From Macrostomum lignano (Eukaryota), in contig NIVC01000962.1 of NCBI GenBank assembly GCA_002269645.1, positions 372,226 to 397,770 of the forward strand: a DNA stretch of 25,545 nucleotides, read 5' to 3'. Shown one piece after another: positions 254 through 19,158 of this stretch. Position 1 is the first letter of the stretch; each line of letters begins with the position of its first letter. The position numbers and the translations under genes were made by a program. The notes beneath the pieces are model-generated. The model was not told where the DNA came from. It saw only the letters and a program-made list of their open reading frames with translations, and searched no databases.

Positions 254-259
254 TTTATT
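254..259 (-). promoter_or_regulatory. Polyadenylation signal AATAAA for gene 2
   Basis: tttatt on the + strand, about 55 nt after the TGA at 314. Confidence 0.5.
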
Positions 260-313: not shown

Positions 314-933
314 TCAATCGAACGCCACTCCCAGATCGGCCGGCCTGAAGTGCACTCCACCCGCCGTGAAATAGGCGTCCAGAGCCTCGTCAAGGTCGGC
401 CAGCATTTGCACAGCGCAGGGCAGCACGCTGAGCAGACCGCCTAGCAGGGCCCGCTCCGAGGTGCTGATCCGTCTGTACAGGGCTCGTGGCGCATCCGGC
501 TCAGCGGGTTCGAGTCGGCCAGCACCTCTCGAATCTCAGACATCAAGTTGTCAATCTCCGATCGTCGCTCCACTTGCACGGCGTCTCTCCGCCTACTCGA
601 AGCTGTCTCAGCGGTTCCAACGCGCCGCTCTCCAAGGCGTCCGTTGCCATGCCAACCTGACTCAACGCGTCCAAATATTCGTCGGCGTAGCGCGCGTCCG
701 GACACCGGGCCAGCTCCGGCCGGCCAGTGCGAAGCTGCCTGAACTCGGCCAGAGATTCAAGTGGGGCCAAGCGGCCGCCGCCGACTAGCAGTTTAGCGTA
801 GTTGATGAGGCCAGTCAAGTTGGACTCGAAGTGCGACTCGAGCTGGCGGAGTCGGGGCAGCGAGCCGGCGTGGGGTGCTGAAGCCGCGACAGCTGGAATT
901 GCCGGGCCAGCCTGAGCATCCGGCAGCACTTCT
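314..933 (-). pseudogene. Gene 2 terminal exon, coding-like but split across frames by three single-base shifts
   Basis: GC-rich, with the third-position G/C bias moving between frames at about 872-875, 585-600 and 481-486. It has a pyrimidine-tract acceptor at 934 and a stop plus AATAAA downstream. It is typed as pseudogene only because the frame is broken; sequencing error is equally possible. Confidence 0.55.
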
Positions 934-3900
934 CTGCGGGTCGGGGGAGAAATGGGTCTTGGGAATGTCGGAACGGTTATCACAGATGTCGGAACTTGTA
1001 CTAGAGATGTCGGAACGGCGGAACGGTTATTACAGATGTCGGAACGGCTTTTACAGATGTCGGAACGGTTATTACAGATGTCGGAACGGGTATTACAGAT
1101 GTTGGAACGGTTTTTACAGATGTCAGAACGGGTGTTACAGATGTCGGAACGGGTATTACAGATGTCGGAACGGTTATTACAGATGTCGGAACGGGTATTA
1201 CAGATGTCGGAACGGGTATCAAAGATGTCGGAACGGTTATTACAGATGTCAGAACGGTTATTACAGATGTTGGAATGGGTATTACAGATGTCGAAACAGG
1301 TATTAGAGATGTCGGAACGGGTATTACAGATGTCGGAACGGTTTTTACAGATGTCAGAACGGGTATTACAGATGTCGGAACGGGTATTACAGATGTCGGA
1401 ACGGGTATTAGAGATGTCGGAACGGGTATTAAAGATGTCGGAACGGTTATTACAGATGTCGGAACGGGTATTAAAGATGTCGGAACGGGTATTACAGATG
1501 TCGGAACGGGTATTAAAGATGTCGGAACGGTTATTACAGATGTCTGAACGGTTATTACAGATGTCGAATGGGTATTACAGATGTCGAAACAGGTATTAGA
1601 GATGTCGGAACGGGTATTACAGATGTCGGAACGGGTATTAGAGATGTCGGAACGGGTATTACAGATGTCGGAACGGTTATTACAGATGTCGGACGGGTAT
1701 TACAGATGTCGGAACGGGTATTAGAGATGTCGGAACGGGTATTACAGATGTCGGAACGGTTATTACAGATGTCGGAACGGGTATTACAGATGTCGGAACG
1801 GGTATTACAGATGTCGGAACGGTATTACAGATGTCGGAACGGGTATTACAGATGTCGGAACGGGTATTACAGATGTCGGAACGGTTATTACAGATGTCGG
1901 AACGGGTATTACAGATGTCGGAACGGGTATTACAGATGTCGGAACGGTTATTACAGATGTCGGAACGGGTATTAGAGATGTCGGAACGGTTTTACAGATG
2001 TCGGAACGGGTATTAGAATAGACAGTAGGGGCGAGTGTAGCCAGGGTAGAAGATAGGCACAGGGATGTTCAAGTACAAACCATCGCTGCTCATGTCGAAC
2101 TGCCAAGGCATTCTTCCGTCCTTCCATTCCTGCTCAACACAGTCGAGCTCTCCAGTCCAGTAGCGAACTTTCATATTGAGCTCTTTTAAGAGCAATTTTT
2201 TCAACGACACTGGATTAACGAAACAGTTGACTAATTCTCGTTCGAGTTGACCGGAAAGGGCATCGGAGCGCAGCTGCGTTAAACCGGACAGGTCCATTGG
2301 GCACAGGATGCAGAGACAGTCTGTAACAGAACCAGAGTAAAATTAGTTACTGGTCCTGTCTAACATGTACAGCTCGTGTCTAACAGGTACAGCTCCTGCC
2401 TAACATATACACCTCCTGTCTAACATGTACACCTCCTGTCTAACATGTACAGCTCCTGTCTAACATGATCAGCACCTGTCTAACATGTACAGCTCTTGTC
2501 TAACAGGTAAATCTCCTATCCAACAGGTACATGTAGAACTCCTATCTAACAGGTAAATCTCCTATCTAACAGGTAAATCTCCAGTCTAACAGGTAAATCT
2601 CCTATCCAACAGGTACATGTAGAACTCCTATCTAACAGGTAAATCTCCTATCTAACAGGTAAATCTCCAGTCTAACAGGTAAATCTCCTATCCAACAGGT
2701 ACATGTAGAACTCCTATCTAACAGGTAAATCTCCTATCTAACAGGTAGAACTCCTATCTAACAGGTAGAACTCCTATCCAACAGGTAAATCTCCTATCTA
2801 ACAGGTAAATCTCCTATCTAACAGGTAGAACTCCTATCTAACAGGTAAATCTCCTATCTAACAGGTAGAACTCCTATCTAACAGGTAAATCTCCTATCTA
2901 ACAGGTAGAACTCCTATCTAACAGGTAAATCTCCTATCTAACAGGTAGAACTCCTATCTAACAGGTAGAACTCCTATCCAACAGGTAGAACTCCTATCCA
3001 ACAGGTAAATCTCCTATCTAACAGGTATTCGACAAAAGTACATTCTGTCCAAGAAAACTACGCTCGTAAACTCTGCCGCACGCAAACCTGATACACAAAA
3101 AAACGAAACCCGTAGGAAATGCTATGAAAGAAAGTTGAGACTTCAGTTTGTCGCAACCTCTCTAGTTGCGAAGATTAGATTTCTAAGAAAACACAGCGCA
3201 GTCAAACCGCAATACTTACAGTCAGCTGAGCATAGCCTGCAATACTGATTGCGTTTAATTTCGCACTGCTGTTTGCTAAAGATCCGAGTAGAAGAGATTA
3301 ATTCAATTATAAGCCTAAAGCTTAGGCATCGGTCTTTATCGGCGAGAAAAACTTAGCAATCTTTACTACCCAAAACATAACGGTGCAGACTTGGCAGTCA
3401 TGTATTTAACGGCAATCGGATAAGAGTCTAGCTCTCATGGCAACAATATTTAAAACAAGCAACTCTCTATCTCACTGCCTCCATCTCAGTCCCTCTATCT
3501 CACTGCCTCCATCTCAGTCCCTCTATCTCACTGGCTCTATCTCAGTCCCTCTATCTCAGTCCCTCTATCTCAGTCCCTCTACCTCAGTCCCTCTATCTCA
3601 GTCCCTCTATCTCAGTCCCTCTACCTCAGTCCCTCTATCTCAGCCCCTCTATCTCAGTCCCTCTATCTCAGTTCCTCTATCTCAGTCCCTCTATCTCAGT
3701 CCCTCTATCTCAGTCCCTCTATCTCAGGCCCTCTATCTCAGTCCCTCTATCTCAGTCCCTCTATCTCAGTCCCTCTATCTCAGTCCCTCTATCTCACTGC
3801 CTCTATCTCAGTCCCTCTATCTCACTGGCTCTATCTCACTCCACGTTGTGCCTTTTAAAGCAAGCATCTCACCATCTGTGAACCCTTCAATGGTAGTTCG

Positions 3901-4812
3901 CAGCAGCAGTCCCCGCTTGCAGAAATATCTACGCAGCCGCAGCAGGTCAGACTTTTGCAGTAGAGCGGCGAATTTCTCAACCAAGCTGACCAGAAAGTAC
4001 TGCCGGGAGCCCAGCTGCTCAGGGTGCAGCGGCTTGGCGTCTATGATGTCCAGGTGGATGGCTATATCGCCTGGGAATCGCGGAGAAGGGTTGAGTTTCA
4101 GAAATGGTGATGTGAACAAAATGGATGGAAAATTTGGTTCAGTCAGACAGCTAAGCAGTGTTGCACTTCATGCAGCAAGAGAGCCCCTTTCTTGAAGAGA
4201 GGTTCTGATTTCTTAGAAAAGTTCGCACTAAGCACTAATTTCTTAGAAAGGAGCCAGTTCCTGGAAATAGGTGTCAAAATCGCAGAAATAAATGCTTAAT
4301 ACTTTAAAAGAGGTGCTCAATTCGTGGAAACAGGTGCCACATTCTTGGAAAAAGGTTCTGATTTCTTGAAAAGAGGTACTGATTTCTTGGAAAGAGGTTC
4401 TGATTTCTTGGAAAGAGGTTCTGATTTCTTAAAAAGAGGTACTGATTTCTTGGAAAGAGGTTCTGATTTCTTGGAAAGAGGTTCTGATTTCTTGGAAATA
4501 GGTTCTGATTTCTTGGAAATAGGTGCTAATTTCTTGGAAATCGGTACTGATTTCTTGAAATGAGACGCTGATTTCTTGGAAAGAAATGCTAATTTCTTGG
4601 AAGACGCGTTGGTTTCATAGAAAGAGGTGCTCGGTTTCATCTTGGAATGAGCTTCTTTTTCAGGGAAAGAGACATCACTTTATTAGAAATAGGTGCCCAA
4701 TTACTCGTCAACGTACGATGGTTGTCTCTGTCTTTAGAGATTCCTCTAATAATCTTAGAGGACTATACTTACCTGGTTTTCTATTGTAGTGAGGCTGAGC
4801 GGACCAGGCCAT
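314..4812 (-). CDS. Uncharacterised spliced gene, about 375 aa: TRADD-N/DEDD-C-like domain plus C-terminal helical domain; last exon frameshifted (assembly error or pseudogene)
   Basis: Model: 4812-4773 (MAWSAQPHYNRKP, donor CCAG|GTAAGT), 4070-3840 (acceptor ttcccag|GC, donor TGGA|GTGAGA), 2320-2081 (acceptor ctgttacag|AC, donor GATG|GTTTGT) and 933-314 (acceptor cccgacccgcag|AG, TGA at 316-314, AATAAA at 259-254). All introns are phase 1. The segment DLSGLTQLRSDALSGQLERELVNCFVNPVSLKKLLLKELNMKV resembles by eye the helix-G-helix-strand pattern of the DEDD C-terminus and TRADD-N. The start codon and the exon 3 donor are inferred. Confidence 0.65.
964..2016. repeat. 21-bp minisatellite ATGTCGGAACGGGTATTACAG (about 50 copies), gene 2 intron 3
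   Basis: Direct periodicity with occasional 20-bp units; produces the MSERVLQ / CRNGYYR pseudo-ORFs. Confidence 0.97.
2081..2320 (-). CDS. Gene 2 exon 3 (NCLCILCPMDL...FDMSSD), core of the TRADD-N-like domain
   Basis: Clear acceptor at 2321, in frame with exon 2. The donor GTTTGT at 2080 is inferred from phase compatibility with exon 4; the alternative is read-through to TAA at 2013. Confidence 0.7.
2356..3027. repeat. 20-bp minisatellite CTAACAGGTAAATCTCCTAT (degenerating to CTAACATGTACAGCTCCTGT), gene 2 intron 2
   Basis: About 33 units; sequence gradient from left to right. Confidence 0.95.
3463..3840. repeat. 14-bp minisatellite CTCTATCTCAGTCC, gene 2 intron 2
   Basis: About 27 units abutting the exon 2 donor. 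Confidence 0.95.
3840..4070 (-). CDS. Gene 2 exon 2 (GDIAIHLD...LKGTTW)
   Basis: 231 nt, open, GC3-rich, phase 1/1, canonical splice sites. Confidence 0.75.
4195..4640. repeat. 21-bp minisatellite GAAAGAGGTTCTGATTTCTTG, gene 2 intron 1
   Basis: Homogeneous core at 4340-4580 with degenerate flanks. Confidence 0.9.
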
Positions 4813-4881: not shown

Positions 4882-5239
4882 CTTTTATATACATGCGAGT
4901 GAAAGTGAAGTAATACAAGCACTCACTTTATTCACTCTTGCAACTCTTAACAAATTGTTTTATTGCATCGTGAGAATAAGAATTGGCATGGCAAGAAATA
5001 GAAAAATGTTTACCACACACTTGTTAATATAGCTTACAATTAATTACAAGCACTTCTGCTTGCTTCTTTCTTTATTGTTAACAGCCAAGAGCTCTATATA
5101 CATGTAAATTTGTATGCACTGCGCTTCTACGAGTTCAAACGAATAGATGTGCTAATAAAAACTGCTCAAAGCGGCCACACACGAAGGTATTGTTCTGTCT
5201 GCTTTGAGCTTTTTAAATGGAAGCAACCAGCACGATTGG

Positions 5240-9841: not shown

Positions 9842-10027
9842 TCAACTCAGCTCCATAATGGGAGCGCTCTCCAACCAGAGCTTGTGTGTGAACTGGTAGA
9901 GCTGCTCAGAAACAGACACCTTGTAAGGCGTGGGATTGAGAAACCTCTTGTGATCCGTGCGCAGAGTCACAAGGGAAGCGGCGGCGTGCTCTCGTATGGA
10001 CTCCAGATTGGGAAGTTCCGACATCAC
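9842..10027 (-). CDS. NAPRT: NAPRT terminal exon 7 ([13 protein letters not shown]...APIMELS*)
   Basis: Acceptor aaccacag|GTG, TGA stop at 9844-9842, family C-terminus [11 protein letters not shown]. Confidence 0.95.
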
Positions 10028-13000
10028 CTGTGGTTCGGGTGTTGATGCGGGGCTTGTGATGTAGATGCGATTTTGGGGATTTCGAACTCAATCTACCTGG
10101 TATGGGATTGGGATTCTAATGTATCGGATTGGGATTCTAATCTATGGAATTGGGATTCTAATCTATGGGATTGGGATTCTATCTATGGGATTGAGATTCT
10201 AATGTATGGGATTGTGATTCTAATCTATGGGATTGGGATTCTAATGTATCGGATTGGGATTCTAATCTATGGGATTGGGATTTTAATGTATCGGATTGGG
10301 ATTCTAATCTATGGGATCGGGATTCTAATCTATGGGATTGGGATTATAATGTATCGGATTGGGATTCTAATCTATGGGATTGGGATTTTAATGTATCGGA
10401 TTGGGATTCTAATCTATGGGATTGGGATTCTAATCTATGGGATTGGGATTCTAATGTCTGGGATTGGGATTCTAATCTATGGAATTGGGATTCTAATCTA
10501 TGGGATTGGGATTCTATCTATGGGATTGAGATTCTAATGTCTGGGATTGTGATTCTAATCTATGGGATTGGGATTCTAATGTATCGGATTGGGATTCTAA
10601 TCTATGGGATTGGGATTCTAATGTATCGGATTGGGATTCTAATCTATGGGATTGGGATTCTAATCTATGGTATTGGAATTCTAACCAATAGAATTGGGAT
10701 TCTGGAAAGTGACAGGGATAACTTTTTTCACCTTGCCCTCGTGCCAGTAGCACCTGTGCAGCTCTTCAACCCGAGAGGGTGTCACGTAGACTCGCTTGGA
10801 TGGCTGTGAAGTGGTACAAATTTGGCAGAATAAGATACTGCAAAGACAGCAATACTATAATACATCTGACAAAATCTATCTCAAACAATTCCTAACTAAA
10901 TCACGACGCTAAATAATAAAATATCACACTTATCCATTACCAGACACTAATCCATTATTTGACACTAATCCATTATCAGACACTAATCCATTACCAGACA
11001 CTAATCCATTACTAGACACTAATCCATTACTAGACACTAATCCATGATCAGACACTAATCCATTACTAGACACTAATCCATTACTAGACACTAATCCATT
11101 ACTAGACACTAATCCATGATCAGACACTAATCCATTACTAGACACTAATACATTACCAGACACTAATCCATTATCTGACACTAATCCATTACCAGACACT
11201 AATCCATTACTAGACACTAATCCATTACTAGACACTAATCCATTACCAGACACTAATCCATTATCAGACACTAATCCATTATCAGACACTAATCCATTAC
11301 CAGACACTAATCCATTACCAGACACTAATCCATGATCAGACACTAATCCATTACTAGACACTAATCCATTACTAGACACTAATCCATTACCAGACACTAA
11401 TCCATGATCAGACACTAATCCATTACTAGACACTAATCCATTACTAGACACTAATCCATTACTAGACACTAATCCATTACCAGACACTAATCCATTACTA
11501 GACACTAATCCATTACTAGACACTAATCCATTACTAGACACTAATCCATGATCAGACACTAATCCATGATCAGACACTAATCCATTACCAGACACTAATC
11601 CATTACTAGACACTAATCCATTACTAGACACTAATCCATGATCAGACACTAATCCATTATCAGACACTAATCCATTACCAGACACTAATCCATTATCAGA
11701 CACTAATCCATGATCAGACACTAATCCATTACTAGACACTAATCCATGATCAGACACTAATCCATTATCAGACACTAATCCATTACCAGACACTAATCCA
11801 TTACCAGACACTAATCCATTACCAGACACTAATCCATTACTAGACACTAATCCATGATCAGACACTAATCCATTACTAGACACTAATCCATTACTAGACA
11901 CTAATCCATTACCAGACACTAATCCATTACTAGACACTAATACATTACCAGACACTAATCCATTATCTGACACTAATCCATTACCAGACACTAATCCATT
12001 ACTAGACACTAATCCATTACTAGACACTAATCCATTACCAGACACTAATCCATTATCAGACACTAATCCATTACCAGACACTAATCCATTACTAGACACT
12101 AATCCATTACTAGACACTAATCCATTACTAGACACTAATCCATTACTAGACACTAATCCATGATCAGACACTAATCCATTATCAGACACTAATCCATGAT
12201 CAGACACTAATCCATTATCAGACACTAATCCATTACCAGGCACTAATCCATTACCAGACACTAATCCATTACCAGACACTAATCCATTACTAGACACTAA
12301 TCCATGATCAGACACTAATCCATTACTAGACACTAATCCATTACTAGACACTAATCCATTACTAGACACTAATCCATTACTAGACACTAATCCATGATCA
12401 GACACTAATCCATTATCAGACACTAATCCATTACCAGACACTAATCCATTACCAGACACTAATCCATTACCAGACACTAATCCATTACTAGACACTAATC
12501 CATGATCAGACACTAATCCATTATCAGACACTAATCCATTACCAGACACTAATCCATTACCAGACACTAATCCATTACCAGACACTAATCCATTACTAGA
12601 CACTAATCCATGATCAGACACTAATCCATTACTAGACACTAATCCATTACTAGACACTAATCCATTACTAGACACTAATCCATTACCAGACACTAATCCA
12701 TTATTAGATACTAATCCATGATCAGACACTAATCCATTATCAGACACTAATCCATGATCAGACACTAATCCATTACCAGACACTAATTCATTACCAGACA
12801 CTAATCCATTATCAGACACTAATCCATTACTAGACACTAATCCATTACCAGACACTAATCCATCATCTGAAAAAAATGCTCACGTGAAAACTATGCCTGG
12901 CCAGCACTCGACTACCAGCCTGAGGCGGTTTCTCATCGGCGCACTGCATCAGATCCAAAATGGCCAAGCCGTCCTGGCCGAACACTCGAAATACTCGCTT

Positions 13001-16000
13001 CCTACCCGGAATTGTCATCTTCTCAACGTCTTCGCTCAGCTTTATAGTTGGCCGACCGTTTACTTCTACTAATTTGTAGACACAGCCCAGTGCCGGCTGC
13101 TTCTGGCACGTGACCAGGTGAGTACCAATGCCGAAGCTGTCAATCTGATGGCCCTGCTGGTTCAGCGAATGGATCGTGTCCTCGTTTATGTCGTTGCTGG
13201 CCACGATGGTCAGGTGTTCGAACCAGGGCATTTTTAGGCTGGAAAGAAGGGATTTGGGATTTCTGTTGTAGCTGAATGGGATTTGGGATTTCTGTTGTAG
13301 CTTAATGGGATTTAGAATTTCTCTTGTAGCTCAATGGGATTTGGGATTTCTCTTGTAGCTCAATGGGATTTGGGATTTCTGTTGTACATGTAGCTTAATG
13401 GGATTTAGAATTTCTCTTGTAGCTCAATGGGATTTGGGATTTCTGTTGTAGCTCAATGGGATTTGGGATTTCTGTTGTAGCTCAATGGGATTTGGGATTT
13501 CTGTTGTAGCTGAATGGGATTTGGGATTTCTGTTGTAGCTTAATGGGATTTAGAATTTCTCTTGTAGCTCAATGGGATTTGGGATTTCTCTTGTAGCTCA
13601 ATGGGATTTGGGATTTCTGTTGTAGCTGAATGGGATTTGGGATTGCTCTTGTAGCTGAATGGGACTTCGGATTTCTGTTGTAGCTGAATGGGATTTGGAA
13701 TTTCTTTTGTAGCTCAATGGGATTTGGGATTTCTGTTGTAGCTGAATGGGATTTGGGATTTCTAAGGGATTTGGGATTTGTGTTGTAGCTGAATGGGATT
13801 TGGGATTTCTGTTGTAGCTCAATGGGATTTGGGATTTCTGTTGTAGCTGAATGGGATTTGGGATTTCTATGGGATTTGGGATTTGTGTTGTAGCTGAATG
13901 GGATTTGGGATTTCTGTTGTAGCTCAATGGGATTTGGGATTTCTGTTGTAGCTTAATGGGATTTGGAATTTCTCTTGTAGCTCAATGGGATTTGGGATTT
14001 CTGTTGTAGCTCAATCGGATTTGGGATTTCTGTTGTAGCTGAATGGGATTTGGGATTTCTATGGGATTTGGGATTTGTGTTGTAGCTGAATGGGATTTGG
14101 AATTTCTTTTGTAGCTCAATGGGATTTGGGATTTCTGTTGTAGCTGAATGGGATTTGGGATTTCTATGGGATTTGGGATTTGTGTTGTAGCTGAATGGGA
14201 TTTGGGATTTCTCTTGTAGCTCAATGGGATTTGGGATTTCTGTTGTAGCTCAATGGGATTTGGAATTTCTCTTGTAGCTCAATGGGATTTGGGATTTCTG
14301 TTGTAGCTCAATCGGATTTGGGATTTCTGTTGTAGCTGAATGGGATTTGGGATTTCTGTTGTAGCTGAATAGGACTTCGGATTTCTGTTGTAGCTAAATC
14401 GGATTTGGGATTTTTTTGTATTCTAGTTGAATGGGATTTAGGATTTGGGATTTCTTTTGTAGCTGATTGGGATTTGGAATTTCTGCTGTAGCTCAATGGG
14501 ATTTGGGATTTCTGTTGTAGCTCAATCGGATTTGGGATTTCTTTTGTAGCTGAATGGAATTTGGGATTTTTGTTGTAGCTGAATGGGATTTGGAATTTCT
14601 CTTTACATAACTAAACTCGCAGACGTACCTGCCAGCCACCTGTCGAAACAGTTCCCGAACCTGCACAGACAGGTAGGCAAGGTCTCCGCTATCCAGCCTG
14701 ACCCCAATTGGCCGATAGCCGAACTGGTCCAGTGCCAAGGCGACGACTATGAAATTGATTACACCGGATCTGGGTGGGAATAAGTGCATGCGACTATGTT
14801 GACGGTTTTAAGTACTTTTAACTTTGAAATCACATTTTATTACATGCCTTCAGACATGTGAGAGTACATGATTGAATGGAATTTAAAGCAGACGATTGAA
14901 AGGCACCTAAAATTACATGCATAAAGGACTTTAAAAGTACATTATTAAAGCACACAAAAAGTACTTTATTGGGGCGCCTAAAAGTACATTACTAAAGTAC
15001 ATCTAAAAGTACATTCTTAGTAGGGCATCTAAAAATACATTTTAGGACATCTAAAAGTACAGTTCGGAAAATTTACGAGTAGAAAAATTTTAAAAGTAAT
15101 TGTTAGCACACTGAAATTTGACTCCGGATGCCAAATTAGCATTATGTTTTTTTTCCAAGCTGAGTGCTTTTTTATTCAAGTTTCATATCTTCTGCAGTTC
15201 ATATTTCAAACTCCGGCCCGCAAAACCTCTCTATCTGGCCCTTGTGTCCTTTGAAACTTCACAATAATAGCAACATGGGCTGCTTAAGGTTTGTCTCTTT
15301 TCAGCTCTTTTTTCTAATTTTCTCTCTTATCTATTTTCTCTCTTCTCCACCTAATCTATCTGTTCCTTGATGTAAAGTTTTCTGAACCCTGCTCGAAAAA
15401 AGTACAAAAAATCATATATCTTACTTTAAGTAGCTGATAGTCTCTTTAGAAACAATTAGATGCTAAGCATGTGTTTTAAGATTATAATTAAGCTACTAAT
15501 AAAGAAGCAAGTTAACTTAACCAACTAGAACAGAGAAGAATACGATAGCATTTCAAAAAAACTGGTAAAGAGAGGAGAGAATAGAGACAGTGCTTCACCC
15601 TCTCAGACACAATGGTTGAAGAATTGGCTTCCAATGAAACGCGCGCACACACACACTTAAAAGTTTACATCTGCATAGCCGCACAGGGTTTTCTAATTAG
15701 CGCAATAGAGTGAGTGAGACACGGGGCAGCACTCAGTGCTTTGGAATTTTTTTAGTCAAGTCTTTCCTGGGCTCCTTCCCTCCTCCCCCTAGCTAGAGGA
15801 TGTTTAAACTTCCCATAGAAAAGCTGCCTCCAAAACGGAAGGGAAAGTAAAACAGTCTTGAGCTTGGAAGCCGCGTTGCTAATGGCAACAGACAACAACT
15901 AAGAAGTGAATTGTCAACAGAGTTAAGCTGTGGGAGGGGAGAGGGTCATGCGTTTATCGATTTATTAATGATGGCGGTGTTTCTTCAAGAAGTCGATTTG

Positions 16001-19000
16001 CTCTGAACTGAGCATTGGAATCTCGATGGTCACCGCTCTGTCTAGACTGCCTGATTTTCATTCAATACTCTCCCTCACTCTCACTCTCCCTTCTCATTCT
16101 CTCTCACTCTCCCCATATCCCTCTCACTCTCCCTATCTCCCTCTCACTCTCCCCTCTCTCTCCCCATCTCCCTCTCACTCTTCCCCTCTCTCTCCCCGTC
16201 TCCCTCTCACTCTCCCTATCTCCCTCTCACTCTCCCTATCTCCCTCTCACTCTCCCTATCTCCCTCTCACTCTCCCTATCTCCCTCTCACTCTCCCCACC
16301 TCCCTCTCCCCGTCTCCCTCTCACTCTCCCCCTCTCTCTCCCCGTCTCCCTCTCACTCTCCCTATCTCCCTCTCACTCTCCCCACCTCCCTCTCCCCGTC
16401 TCCCTCTCACTCTCTTAATCTCCCTCTCATTCTCCTTATCTCCCTCTCACTCTCCCCATCTCCCTCTCACTCTTCCTATCTTCCTCTCACTCTCCCTATC
16501 TCCCTCTCACTCTCCCCATCTCCCTCTCACTCTCCCCATCTTCCTCTCACTCTCCCTATCTCCTTCTCACTCTCCCCATCTTCCTCTCACTCTCCCTATC
16601 TCCCTCTCACTCTCCCCGTCTCCCTCTCACTCTCCCCGTCTCCTTCTCCCTCTCCCCGTCTCCCTCTCACTCTCTTAATCTCCCTCTCATTCTCCCTATC
16701 TCCTTCTCACTCTCCCCATCTTCCTCTCACTCTCCCTATCTCCCTCTCACTCTCCCCGTCTCCCTCTCACTCTCCCCGTCTCCTTCTCACTCTCCCCGTC
16801 TCCCTCTCACTCTCTTAATCTCCCTCTCATTCTCCTTATCTCCCTCTCACTCTCCCCACCTCCCTCTCCCCGTCTCCCTCTCACTCTCCCCCTCTCTCTC
16901 CCCGTCTCCCTCTCACTCTCCCTATCTCCCTCTCACTCTCCCCACCTCCCTCTCCCCGTCTCCCTCTCACTCTCTTAATCTCCCTCTCATTCTCCTTATC
17001 TCCCTCTCACTCTCCCCATCTCCCTCTCACTCTTCCTATCTTCCTCTCACTCTCCCTATCTCCCTCTCACTCTCCCCATCTCCCTCTCACTCTCCCCATC
17101 TCCCTCTCACTCTCCCCATCTTCCTCTCACTCTCCCTATCTCCTTCTCACTCTCCCCATCTTCCTCTCACTCTCCCTATCTCCCTCTCACTCTCCCCGTC
17201 TCCCTCTCACTCTCCCCGTCTCCTTCTCACTCTCCCCGTCTCCCTCTCACTCTCTTAATCTCGCTCTCATTCTCCCCGTCTCAATCTCACTCTTTCCGGT
17301 CTCCCCCTATCTTTCTTTACCTACTCTCATTCTCTCCGTTTCTATCTCACTAGCCCATTCTCCCTTTCCTCTCTGTCTTTTAGTCTCCCTCTCTCCCCAT
17401 GTTCTCCATTACTTATTTTATCCTTACCCAACCACCCAGCATCTCCAAGCCCAAGCGCCATAGAAAGCATTACATAAGTAGCAAAAACTCACTTGAGCAC
17501 ATTATAGGTGTCAATCAAGGCCAGAAACGAGCCGGGAAAAGCCAAAGCGTAAGCGGCAAAGGCAGTCAACTCGCCAACGTTGACATTGGCAGTTGGCAGG
17601 CCAACTTGAGCCTCAACTGTACGCCGGCACTGATTCACGGCCTCAATAAAATCTCCCAGTTGACCAGTAGTCTTATTCTTGAGCATTCTCTCCTTCACTT
17701 CATCCAAACTATAAAACGAAGTAACGAAAGCGTGCGCGTGGGTGCCTTTAACTGGAATGCCGTATAGTTTCCCAGCTAGCACATTGCTAGTGCCATTGAA
17801 TCCGCCAACAAAACAGTAGCGACTGGCCGACAGAGCGCCGTCCGGTCCTTGAGCCCGGCGAAGGCCAAACTCCAACAGCTGTTTAGTGGGCCCAGCGGCC
17901 AGTCTAAACCTTGCCGCATTGGTAGCCTGCAGGCTGGCAAAGTTAACCAAATTCAACAGGGTGGTCTCCAACAGTTGGCAAACTATTAGCGGGCCTTCGA
18001 CTCGGATTAGCGGCACTTTTGGGAACACAGCGCTGCCCTCTTCCACAGCGTAGAGACTCACGCCTTGGGCGGTGAGGGTGGCTAAGTAGTCGAAAAATTC
18101 CGAATCAGCACTTGGTGGCAGAACAGTCCGAAGGTAGGCAATGTCTGCGCGTGATATTTTGAATAGAAATGGGGTGTACAGAACTTGTATTGAATAGCAA
18201 GTTGTCTTTCTTTTCCATAGTCAGCTTGCATACTCTTTATAACACTTTCTAATCTTGAATTTCCACTCGATAATTGATAAGCTTGATAATTTATAAGCTC
18301 GATAATCGATAAGCTTGATACTTAATATGCTTGATAATTGATAAGCTCGATAATTGATAAGCTCAACAATTGATAAGCTCGATAATTGATAAGCTCAACA
18401 ATTGATAAGCTCGATAATTGATAAGCTCAACAATTGATAAGCTCAACAATTGATAAGCTCGATAATTGATAAGCTCAACAATTGATAAGCTCGATAATTG
18501 ATAAGCTCAACAATTGATAAGCTCGATAATTGATAAGCTCGATAATTGAAAAGCTCGATAATTAATAAGCTCAACAATTGATAAGCTCGATAAATGATAA
18601 GCTCAACAATTGATAAGCTCGATAATTGATAAGCTCGATAATTGAAAAGCTCGATAATTAATAAGCTCAACAATTGATAAGCTCGATAATTGATAAGCTC
18701 AACAATTGATAAGCTCGATAATTGATAAGCTCAGCATTAAATAGGCCTGAAACTTGATAATTTAAACATTTCACGAATTACAAAGGGATTCTAAATCAAC
18801 ATAAAAGCTATGACTGTCAATTAGATTACAAAGAATAGCACTCAATCTCACCTTGTTCTGAATACCGAAATCGCTGAACAAATTTTAGACACTCTTCTAG
18901 ACCAGCAAATAAGGCAAATTCGCCCTGGAATGGACACTTTCGAAAATATAGGTCAAACACAGCTGTGTCATTGACTTTGTTGGCCTTCCAATAGGCATAT

Positions 19001-19158
19001 GCCATGGATATCTGGTAGAAGTCTGATGAAAAAAGGATATCATAAGTATCATTTTTAATAATTAAATAATTACTATAGAATAAATAAGTTGGCACTGAAA
19101 AAACACTTTCAAATAACTTACCAGTAAGCAATGGCTGAATGATATTATTTTGATTCAT
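9842..19158 (-). CDS. NAPRT: Nicotinate phosphoribosyltransferase (Preiss-Handler NAD+ salvage), 7 coding exons, 537 aa
   Basis: Manual splicing of 19158-19122, 19022-18852, 18144-17493, 14769-14629, 13238-12884, 10803-10732 and 10027-9842 gives 1614 nt with GT..AG introns in consistent phase (1,1,2,2,0,0) and no internal stop. The product carries the NAPRT family motifs [54 protein letters not shown] (phospho-His motif), [38 protein letters not shown], and the C-terminal [11 protein letters not shown]. Confidence 0.97.
10072..10703. repeat. 21-bp minisatellite TGGGATTCTAATCTATGGGAT, NAPRT intron 6
   Basis: About 30 units filling almost the whole intron. Confidence 0.95.
10732..10803 (-). 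CDS. NAPRT: NAPRT exon 6 ([24 protein letters not shown])
   Basis: Acceptor cacttcacag|CCA, donor AAG|GTGAAA, 72 nt. It is not in the ORF track in this frame and was found by translation. Confidence 0.9.
10932..12862. repeat. 18-bp minisatellite GACACTAATCCATTAC(C/T)A (about 107 copies), NAPRT intron 5
   Basis: Uninterrupted 18-bp periodicity; variation is concentrated in one 6-nt window. Confidence 0.98.
12884..13238 (-). CDS. NAPRT: NAPRT exon 5 ([16 protein letters not shown]...ARHSFH)
   Basis: Acceptor cttctttccag|C, donor CAC|GTGAGC, 355 nt. Confidence 0.95.
13249..14600. repeat. 29-bp minisatellite GGGATTTCTGTTGTAGCTCAATGGGATTT with 17-bp sub-units, NAPRT intron 4
   Basis: Fills the intron to within about 10 nt of the acceptor and about 30 nt of the donor. 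Confidence 0.95.
14629..14769 (-). CDS. NAPRT: NAPRT exon 4 (SGVINF...GVRLDSGD...VAG)
   Basis: Acceptor ttcccacccag|A, donor GCAG|GTACGT, 141 nt. Confidence 0.95.
14810..15105. repeat. Degenerate AAAAGTAC(ATT) repeat, NAPRT intron 3
   Basis: Recurrent aaagtac motif at irregular spacing. Confidence 0.55.
15875..15889. promoter_or_regulatory. RFX X-box-like palindrome GTTGCTAATGGCAAC
   Basis: Fits GTNRCY-N(0-3)-RGYAAC; lies in the only non-repetitive, GC-richer island of NAPRT intron 3. Confidence 0.35.
16068..17400. repeat. 20-bp polypyrimidine minisatellite CTCCCTCTCACTCTCCC(C/T)AT, NAPRT intron 3
   Basis: About 1.3 kb, mostly C/T on the + strand; internal block duplication (16291 matches 16851). 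Confidence 0.96.
17493..18144 (-). CDS. NAPRT: NAPRT exon 3 ([10 protein letters not shown]...IDTYNVLK)
   Basis: Acceptor cgcgcag|AC, donor CTCAA|GTGAGT, 652 nt; contains EFGLRRAQG and GTHAH. Confidence 0.96.
18266..18733. repeat. 16-bp minisatellite AATTGATAAGCTC(GAT/AAC), NAPRT intron 2
   Basis: About 29 units with two alternating variants. Confidence 0.95.
18852..19022 (-). CDS. NAPRT: NAPRT exon 2 ([13 protein letters not shown]...RFRYSEQ)
   Basis: Acceptor tttttcatcag|AC, donor CAAG|GTGAGA, 171 nt. Confidence 0.95.
19122..19158 (-). CDS. NAPRT: NAPRT coding exon 1 ([12 protein letters not shown])
   Basis: ATG at 19158, donor ACTG|GTAAGT; joins to exon 2 to give the conserved QPLLTDFYQ. 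Confidence 0.85.

Follow-up and report, generated by a model that had tools for sequence, protein, structure and literature searches.

The window analysed here, a stretch of 25,545 nucleotides from contig NIVC01000962.1 of the Macrostomum lignano assembly GCA_002269645.1, carries on its minus strand a genuine gene of four exons that codes for a protein of 366 amino acids. In its predicted structure this protein combines an N-terminal alpha/beta domain with a C-terminal helical bundle that matches, by structure and by profile, the microtubule inner protein SPACA9. A search of a collection of 5.8 billion proteins returned a single match, the UniRef entry A0A1I8IH29 (M. lignano, 366 aa; E 2e-212), to which the conceptual product is identical but for four places, namely the end of exon 2 and three points in exon 4. 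The gene is already modelled in UniProt, and a first-pass annotation made from the window letters, which had called it hidden, was right only for this assembly copy, which cannot be translated cleanly as it stands. We ran all protein analyses on the deposited protein and left the window sequence unrepaired.

The gene and its reading frame

All exon borders follow the GT-AG rule and all junctions are in phase 1 (Table 1). This four-exon layout, proposed in the first-pass annotation, is borne out far beyond chance by the deposited protein, by a paralog in the same species and by conserved intron positions, and the residues coded by exon 1 align with the family motif RPxFxRxxG. The end of exon 2, by contrast, had been placed at 3840 instead of 3873, which added 11 residues (GEMLALKGTTW) without counterpart in any member of the family; they would sit in the tight turn between beta2 and beta3. 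The corrected coding sequence amounts to 40+198+240+620 = 1098 nt, or 367 codons once three missing bases are added. The uncorrected splice of 1131 nt, taken earlier to give ~375 amino acids, runs into a stop codon 38 codons into exon 4, and the three exon 4 peptides quoted in the first-pass annotation sit in three different frames. Retention of intron 3 would extend exon 3 by 22 codons to the TAA at 2013-2015 (open reading frame 2013-2297, minus strand), and the product would in that case be a protein consisting of the N-terminal domain only.

To yield the 366-aa frame, exon 4 requires one added G at each of three points. At each of them the adjoining protein segments overlap by one base when placed on the window, so the window is short of one G there; family-conserved residues lie on both sides of every break, and exon 4 of the paralog is a single unbroken frame. 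These breaks are likely to be indel errors of the assembly and not signs of gene decay. With them corrected, the window and the deposited protein show no amino-acid difference over 366 codons, whereas in a truly decaying pseudogene substitutions should far outnumber indels. Each of the three events removes one G from a GG pair within an exon of 66% GC, a type of change typical of long-read consensus error, and every splice site, the ATG and stop codons and the polyadenylation signal AATAAA remain intact. Weighing against this reading, no frameshift is seen over ~1.6 kb of coding sequence in the NAPRT gene of this window, so the assembly is not error-ridden in general. Three breaks inside 620 nt might be real frameshifts of a recently inactivated pseudogene, and the partly duplicated genome of M. 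lignano would then hold a functional copy at another place. The intact product is moreover recorded only in UniRef, and the assembly collection holds no gene of exactly that product. Given the complete lack of substitutions, we nevertheless regard such an inactivation as unlikely.

Table 1. Coordinates of the four-exon gene, its frame breaks and the neighbouring gene (positions in the window; (-), minus strand)
Feature	Position	Strand	Details
Exon 1, 40 nt	4773..4812	(-)	ATG 4812-4810; MAWSAQPHYNRKP + first base of G14; donor GTAAGT
Intron 1, phase 1	4071..4772	(-)	contains 21/63-bp minisatellite, 4302-4602
Exon 2, 198 nt	3873..4070	(-)	aa 14-79, N-domain beta1, alpha1, alpha2, beta2; last residues FTD; donor GTGAGA at 3872-3867
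Intron 2, phase 1	2321..3872	(-)	minisatellites: 14-bp (3465-3842), 20/40-bp (2354-3027)
Exon 3, 240 nt	2081..2320	(-)	aa 80-159, N-domain beta3, alpha3-alpha5, beta4, alpha6
Intron 3, phase 1	934..2080	(-)	between the two domains; 21-bp minisatellite 962-2015, ~1 kb
Exon 4, 620 nt	314..933	(-)	aa 160-366 + TGA (316-314); linker helix and SPACA9-like bundle
TATA-like hexamer, possible core promoter	4886..4891	(-)	~75 nt 5' of ATG; pattern match only
AATAAA polyadenylation signal	254..259	(-)	55 nt past stop codon; pattern match only
Frame break 1	869	(-)	window ACG-CC vs protein's ACG-GCC (T181/A182)
Frame break 2	579	(-)	window CCG-TG vs protein's CCG-GTG (P278/V279); between invariant E276 and Q280
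Frame break 3	484	(-)	window GAG-CC vs protein's GAG-GCC (E310/A311)
NAPRT (nicotinate phosphoribosyltransferase), multi-exon	~9845-19158	(-)	upstream of the four-exon gene, same strand
NAPRT exons with Pfam NAPRTase_N, NAPRTase, NAPRTase_C	19158-18829, 18220-17492, 13330-12866	(-)	
NAPRT further exons	near 14789-14606, 10854-10684	(-)	last exon ends near 9845

A protein family found here in Spiralia only

An exhaustive phmmer search of 1.84 billion cluster representatives recovered 19 proteins at E<=0.001, 12 of which aligned full-length. They include the M. lignano paralog (43% identity, E 8e-92) and members of ~350-400 aa, alignable over nearly their whole length, from the nemertean Tubulanus, the annelid Paralvinella, Schistosoma and molluscs, both gastropods (Lottia, Haliotis, Babylonia and Lymnaea) and bivalves (Mercenaria and Pecten). 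The family is made up of proteins of ~360 aa, and its named members, all spiralian (flatworms, a nemertean, molluscs and an annelid), are labelled ‘uncharacterized’ or ‘hypothetical’. It is unnamed and unrecognised by Pfam, every one of the 19 members scoring below threshold for all of its families. We relied on the exhaustive search because a word-indexed homolog search found only A0A1I8IH29, failing to pick up even the 43%-identical paralog, and returned only two of the input members when queried with the family alignment. The three intron positions of the window gene are common to the paralog and to the Paralvinella gene, including the intron that separates the two domains, and the four-exon structure is therefore old. 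The strongest motifs of the family are PLxQIHxxCETExQR, in the loop between the second and third long helices of the bundle (H2 and H3), and DxDxxxDEY, at the end of the fourth (H4).

Five entries of ~185 aa (P0013-16 and P0018), from source contigs of ~1-6 kb, match the C-terminal half only. They might pass for stand-alone relatives of the size of SPACA9; we read them instead as open reading frame calls on the last exon because all of them span this exon only and two begin exactly at the conserved Met of ‘MLR’, close to where that exon starts. Two UniRef names in M. lignano look like annotation artefacts, namely ‘DHC_N2 domain-containing protein’ for the window protein, which has no Pfam match at E<=10, and ‘MutS homolog 6’ for a second entry (P0020), whose cluster representative (P0002) has no matching domain. 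Pfam matches to EAD1 (E 0.14) and DUF2721 (E 0.01) were likewise set aside, as they fall under the cutoffs and are absent from other members.

The C-terminal bundle and SPACA9

Modelled from its sequence alone, the protein gave an unusable AlphaFold2 prediction (pLDDT 34); only the 19-sequence family alignment yielded a confident one (pLDDT 93.2, pTM 0.87). Residues 16-146 of this model form a compact alpha/beta domain of ~150 aa with four strands and six helices, in the order b1-a1-a2-b2-b3-a3-a4-a5-b4-a6. A linker helix (160-177) leads to residues 184-352, which fold into a bundle of eight helices (184-210, 221-230, 232-236, 240-269, 278-298, 303-305, 310-313 and 318-352), four of them long; a pair of short ones follows the first long helix and another pair the third. 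The succession of an N-terminal alpha/beta domain and a helical domain of ~200 aa is thus as the first-pass annotation had described it. The high pTM suggests that the two domains are packed together in the model.

The helical half, which had been taken as unrecognised and faintly BAR-like, resembles one protein in particular. A Foldseek search of the PDB put SPACA9 chains at every rank from 1 to 19, taken from axoneme and singlet-microtubule structures of human, mouse, bovine and porcine origin, with a best E of 2e-4, a probability of 1.0 for 19/19, target-normalised TM scores of 0.68-0.82 and rmsd values of 1.9-4.6 Å over ~165 columns. Nothing significant follows past rank 19 (E 0.33 and above), and no BAR-domain protein occurs among the top 50 matches. 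A structural search of BFVD found nothing, its best matches being at noise level. The helices of the C-terminal model match the published SPACA9 topology (H1, h1, h2, H2, H3, h3, h4, H4), a fold that has been called unique and for which searches of the PDB and of the human AlphaFold models retrieved no similar protein (PMC9564825). The alignment is collinear (Foldseek TM ~0.8, rmsd ~3 Å) and keeps the two short helices after H1 and the two after H3.

Sequence profiles point in the same direction. Searched against PDB sequences with hmmsearch, the profile of the C-terminal domain retrieved four distinct SPACA9 sequences at E 0.008-0.06, the match at E 0.008 running over two collinear stretches. 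Aligned by hhalign to a 63-sequence SPACA9 alignment, it gave a probability of 81% and an E of 1.2e-5, with a score of 39.4 over 112 columns. This score was reached by 0/60 block shuffles (18.8+-2.6) and lies ~8 standard deviations above this null, and cross-domain controls gave 0.1%. The SPACA9 alignment consists of mammals and one bird and is low in diversity. The TRADD and SPACA9 sequences were collected with a chimeric TRADD-N + SPACA9 query, whose best 120 of 445 matches came from mammals and one bird; both profiles are therefore shallow. Motifs shared with SPACA9 are LR..E..[FY]...F in H1, [IL]H.G in the loop between H2 and H3 and, where H4 begins, H....ExR...G-[LV]-V-S-L-I-P, within which VSLIPL is identical between Lottia and human. 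A bird entry labelled SPACA9, that of Acridotheres tristis (P0029, 513 aa), contains two tandem SPACA9 units in a single model, the result of a tandem duplication or else of the merging of gene models.

The family also departs from SPACA9 in several respects. Identity between the two is only 16-22%, the family adds the N-terminal domain of ~150 aa and the linker helix, and it lacks the proline- and glycine-rich C-terminal tail of SPACA9. Its own motifs PLxQIHxxCETExQR and DxDxxxDEY are absent from the aligned mammalian and bird SPACA9 sequences, and it was seen here in spiralians only. Two observations weigh against the relationship itself or its functional consequences. The Pfam SPACA9 model (PF15120) is blind to the family, being absent from the 25 families listed for the 19 members at E<=10, and at most one member could match it, weakly. 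In addition, the residues reported to contact tubulin and SAXO (Q20, Q21, H37, T61, R64, Y117 and N123) are not retained in the columns examined: in a MAFFT alignment of SPACA9 added to the family, uncertain at this identity, the positions of Q20, Q21, T61, R64 and N123 vary or differ among the family members. The nearby SPACA9 H119 aligns with a conserved family His. Binding to the microtubule lattice may therefore differ or be absent.

Both observations would also agree with a convergence of long helical bundles, in which case the protein would have an unrelated function, for instance as a soluble scaffold or in association with a membrane. The modest support from sequence alone (hmmsearch E ~0.01) points the same way, designed coiled coils scoring higher as the best PDB sequence matches of the profile, although these latter matches are compositional. 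Convergence, however, hardly accounts for the specificity of the structural match, confined to SPACA9 chains for a fold in which its own authors found no look-alikes (PMC9564825), nor for a full-length collinear alignment in which the short helices are inserted in an identical pattern, the presence of ExR...G-V-V-S-L-I-P in the equivalent position of both proteins, and a profile score so far above its shuffle null. We thus consider convergence improbable and homology, whether orthologous or paralogous, very probable as the origin of the SPACA9 fold of the C-terminal half. Functional equivalence to SPACA9, argued by analogy, is more doubtful, if quite possible.

The N-terminal domain and the proposed function

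The first-pass annotation had likened the N-terminal half, from a stretch within exon 3, to the N-terminal domain of TRADD and to the C-terminal domain of DEDD, and proposed a signalling adaptor of apoptosis or innate immunity in which a helical output module replaces the death-fold domain. There are indeed features that invite this comparison. The TRADD-N domain is a two-layer alpha+beta sandwich with a four-stranded antiparallel sheet and kinked helices, six in TRADD, and the N-terminal domain of the family has the same count of elements (four antiparallel strands, six helices), in an order that fits the published description, and its two long helices are each broken in two, as in the alpha/beta plait of the TRADD-N superfamily (PF09034, PF20694; DEDD2, NCOA6). 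TRADD-N (1f3v_A) is among the first Foldseek matches other than SPACA9 (rank 21). An hhalign comparison with 51 mammalian TRADD-N sequences gave a score of 21.7 over 85 columns, above reversed controls (11.5-11.8) and above all block shuffles (12.5+-2.6, maximum 20.9, 0/60 reaching 21.7). In this weak collinear alignment the family pattern LW..Y..GKL...Q pairs with TRADD FLRAYREGALRAALQ over beta2-beta3-alpha3. The same stretch of the Lymnaea protein (aa 106-136) matches Pfam TRADD-like_N at E 0.065, and human TRADD is annotated with both TRADD_N and TRADD-like_N.

None of these comparisons, however, reaches significance. The Foldseek match (E 0.34, probability 0.28, TM 0.29) is at the level of noise matches such as an IS608 transposase or the best BFVD hit. 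The Lymnaea match, found in 1/19 members, has 13.5 bits against a cutoff of 23.7, Pfam TRADD_N matches 0/19 members, and a search of PDB sequences with the profile of the N-terminal domain brings up no TRADD at E<=10. The hhalign probability is only 4.3% against a TRADD profile low in diversity (Neff 1.6), and its P of 0.0095 is untrustworthy because a nonsense control, the reversed helical alignment, gave P ~0.009 too; in its N-terminal part this alignment sets TRADD beta1 against alpha1 of the family, which has an additional helix between alpha1 and beta2. The ‘uS’ motif of the beta2-beta3 turn (a tiny residue, then Ser or Cys), strongly conserved across the TRADD-N superfamily (Kaur et al. 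2021), is missing from the family, where the turn reads ExFxxG[ILMNV] or TDD/TDK, with a Gly or Asp after which comes a hydrophobic residue in place of Ser or Cys.

The company kept by the domain also differs from that of TRADD-N, which is coupled to Death, DED, NTPase or effector domains. No DD, DED, CARD or NTPase match occurs in any member, in agreement with the earlier statement that the protein has no death-fold domain, and the sole partner is the SPACA9-like bundle, a cytoskeletal fold. FADD has been detected in no platyhelminth and the parasitic ones have lost their DED caspases, which has been read as loss of the extrinsic pathway (PMC11463336); the family nonetheless persists in Macrostomum and Schistosoma. 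True membership of the N-terminal domain in TRADD-N is thus improbable, as is the apoptotic or innate-immune adaptor built upon it, and the signalling-adaptor interpretation is unsupported at present. Neither the SPACA9 relationship nor the two-domain arrangement is described in the literature we found, in which SPACA9 and the spiralian taxa searched are never mentioned together. A combination of both ideas, a very divergent TRADD-N adaptor domain devoid of ‘uS’ and fused in spiralians to a SPACA9-type module of the microtubule lumen, would be quite a long shot. If true, it would represent an architecture without described counterpart, in which an interaction surface of the TRAF/MATH style is tethered to the microtubule lattice or, alternatively, would imply that a cytoskeletal role of TRADD-N-like plaits is older than their signalling role.

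The SPACA9 match shifts the likely biology of the protein from apoptosis and innate-immune signalling to the cytoskeleton and cilia. SPACA9, the sperm acrosome-associated protein 9, lines the lumenal wall of microtubules in cilia, flagella and the manchette, including ciliary doublets and sperm-tip singlets, where it sits at the alpha/beta-tubulin intradimer interface with an 8 nm repeat and is reported to staple protofilaments. By analogy, the best explanation for the family, and one that we moderately favour, is that of a divergent SPACA9-like, probably microtubule- or cilium-associated structural protein with an extra N-terminal domain. In this divergent SPACA9-like protein, the C-terminal half would dock on the tubulin lattice as SPACA9 does and the N-terminal domain would contribute a second protein-binding surface. 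Judging from helix order alone, the motifs PLxQIHxxCETExQR and DxDxxxDEY would be found at the far end of the bundle from the tubulin-binding cap helices of SPACA9, near the attachment of the N-terminal domain, and may mark an inter-domain interface or a family-specific site.

The family would thereby provide a second, highly divergent set of proteins with a fold that was reported as unique, missed by the Pfam SPACA9 model, found here in Spiralia only and always together with an N-terminal alpha/beta domain. Should its members bind microtubules as well, the list of microtubule inner proteins known from outside the vertebrates would grow. M. lignano is amenable to transgenesis and has an accessible ciliated epidermis, which makes it a workable animal in which to address the function of a SPACA9-type module.

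Repeats, neighbouring gene and paralog loci

Tandem minisatellite DNA makes up ~58% of the window, in 17 arrays with their own unit of 14-31 bp each, in addition to a (TCTG)n repeat at 1-204. These arrays occupy every intron of the four-exon gene and of NAPRT, the gene located upstream. Their presence offers a lesson for annotation, as a conserved gene was obscured here by introns packed with minisatellites and by a GC-rich exon with three indels of one base each. The paralog locus (positions 7500-12000 of contig L001) has no tandem repeats, so the repeat load is specific to the window locus and not to the gene family.

No flanking gene is common to the paralog loci and the window locus. The paralog itself lies on at least two near-identical contigs of GCA_002269645.1 (L001, 8001-11492; L002, 8001-11489), in keeping with the partly duplicated genome of this species. 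On both contigs it is followed by a caveolin gene, to which L001 adds an enoyl-CoA hydratase gene, likewise after the paralog.

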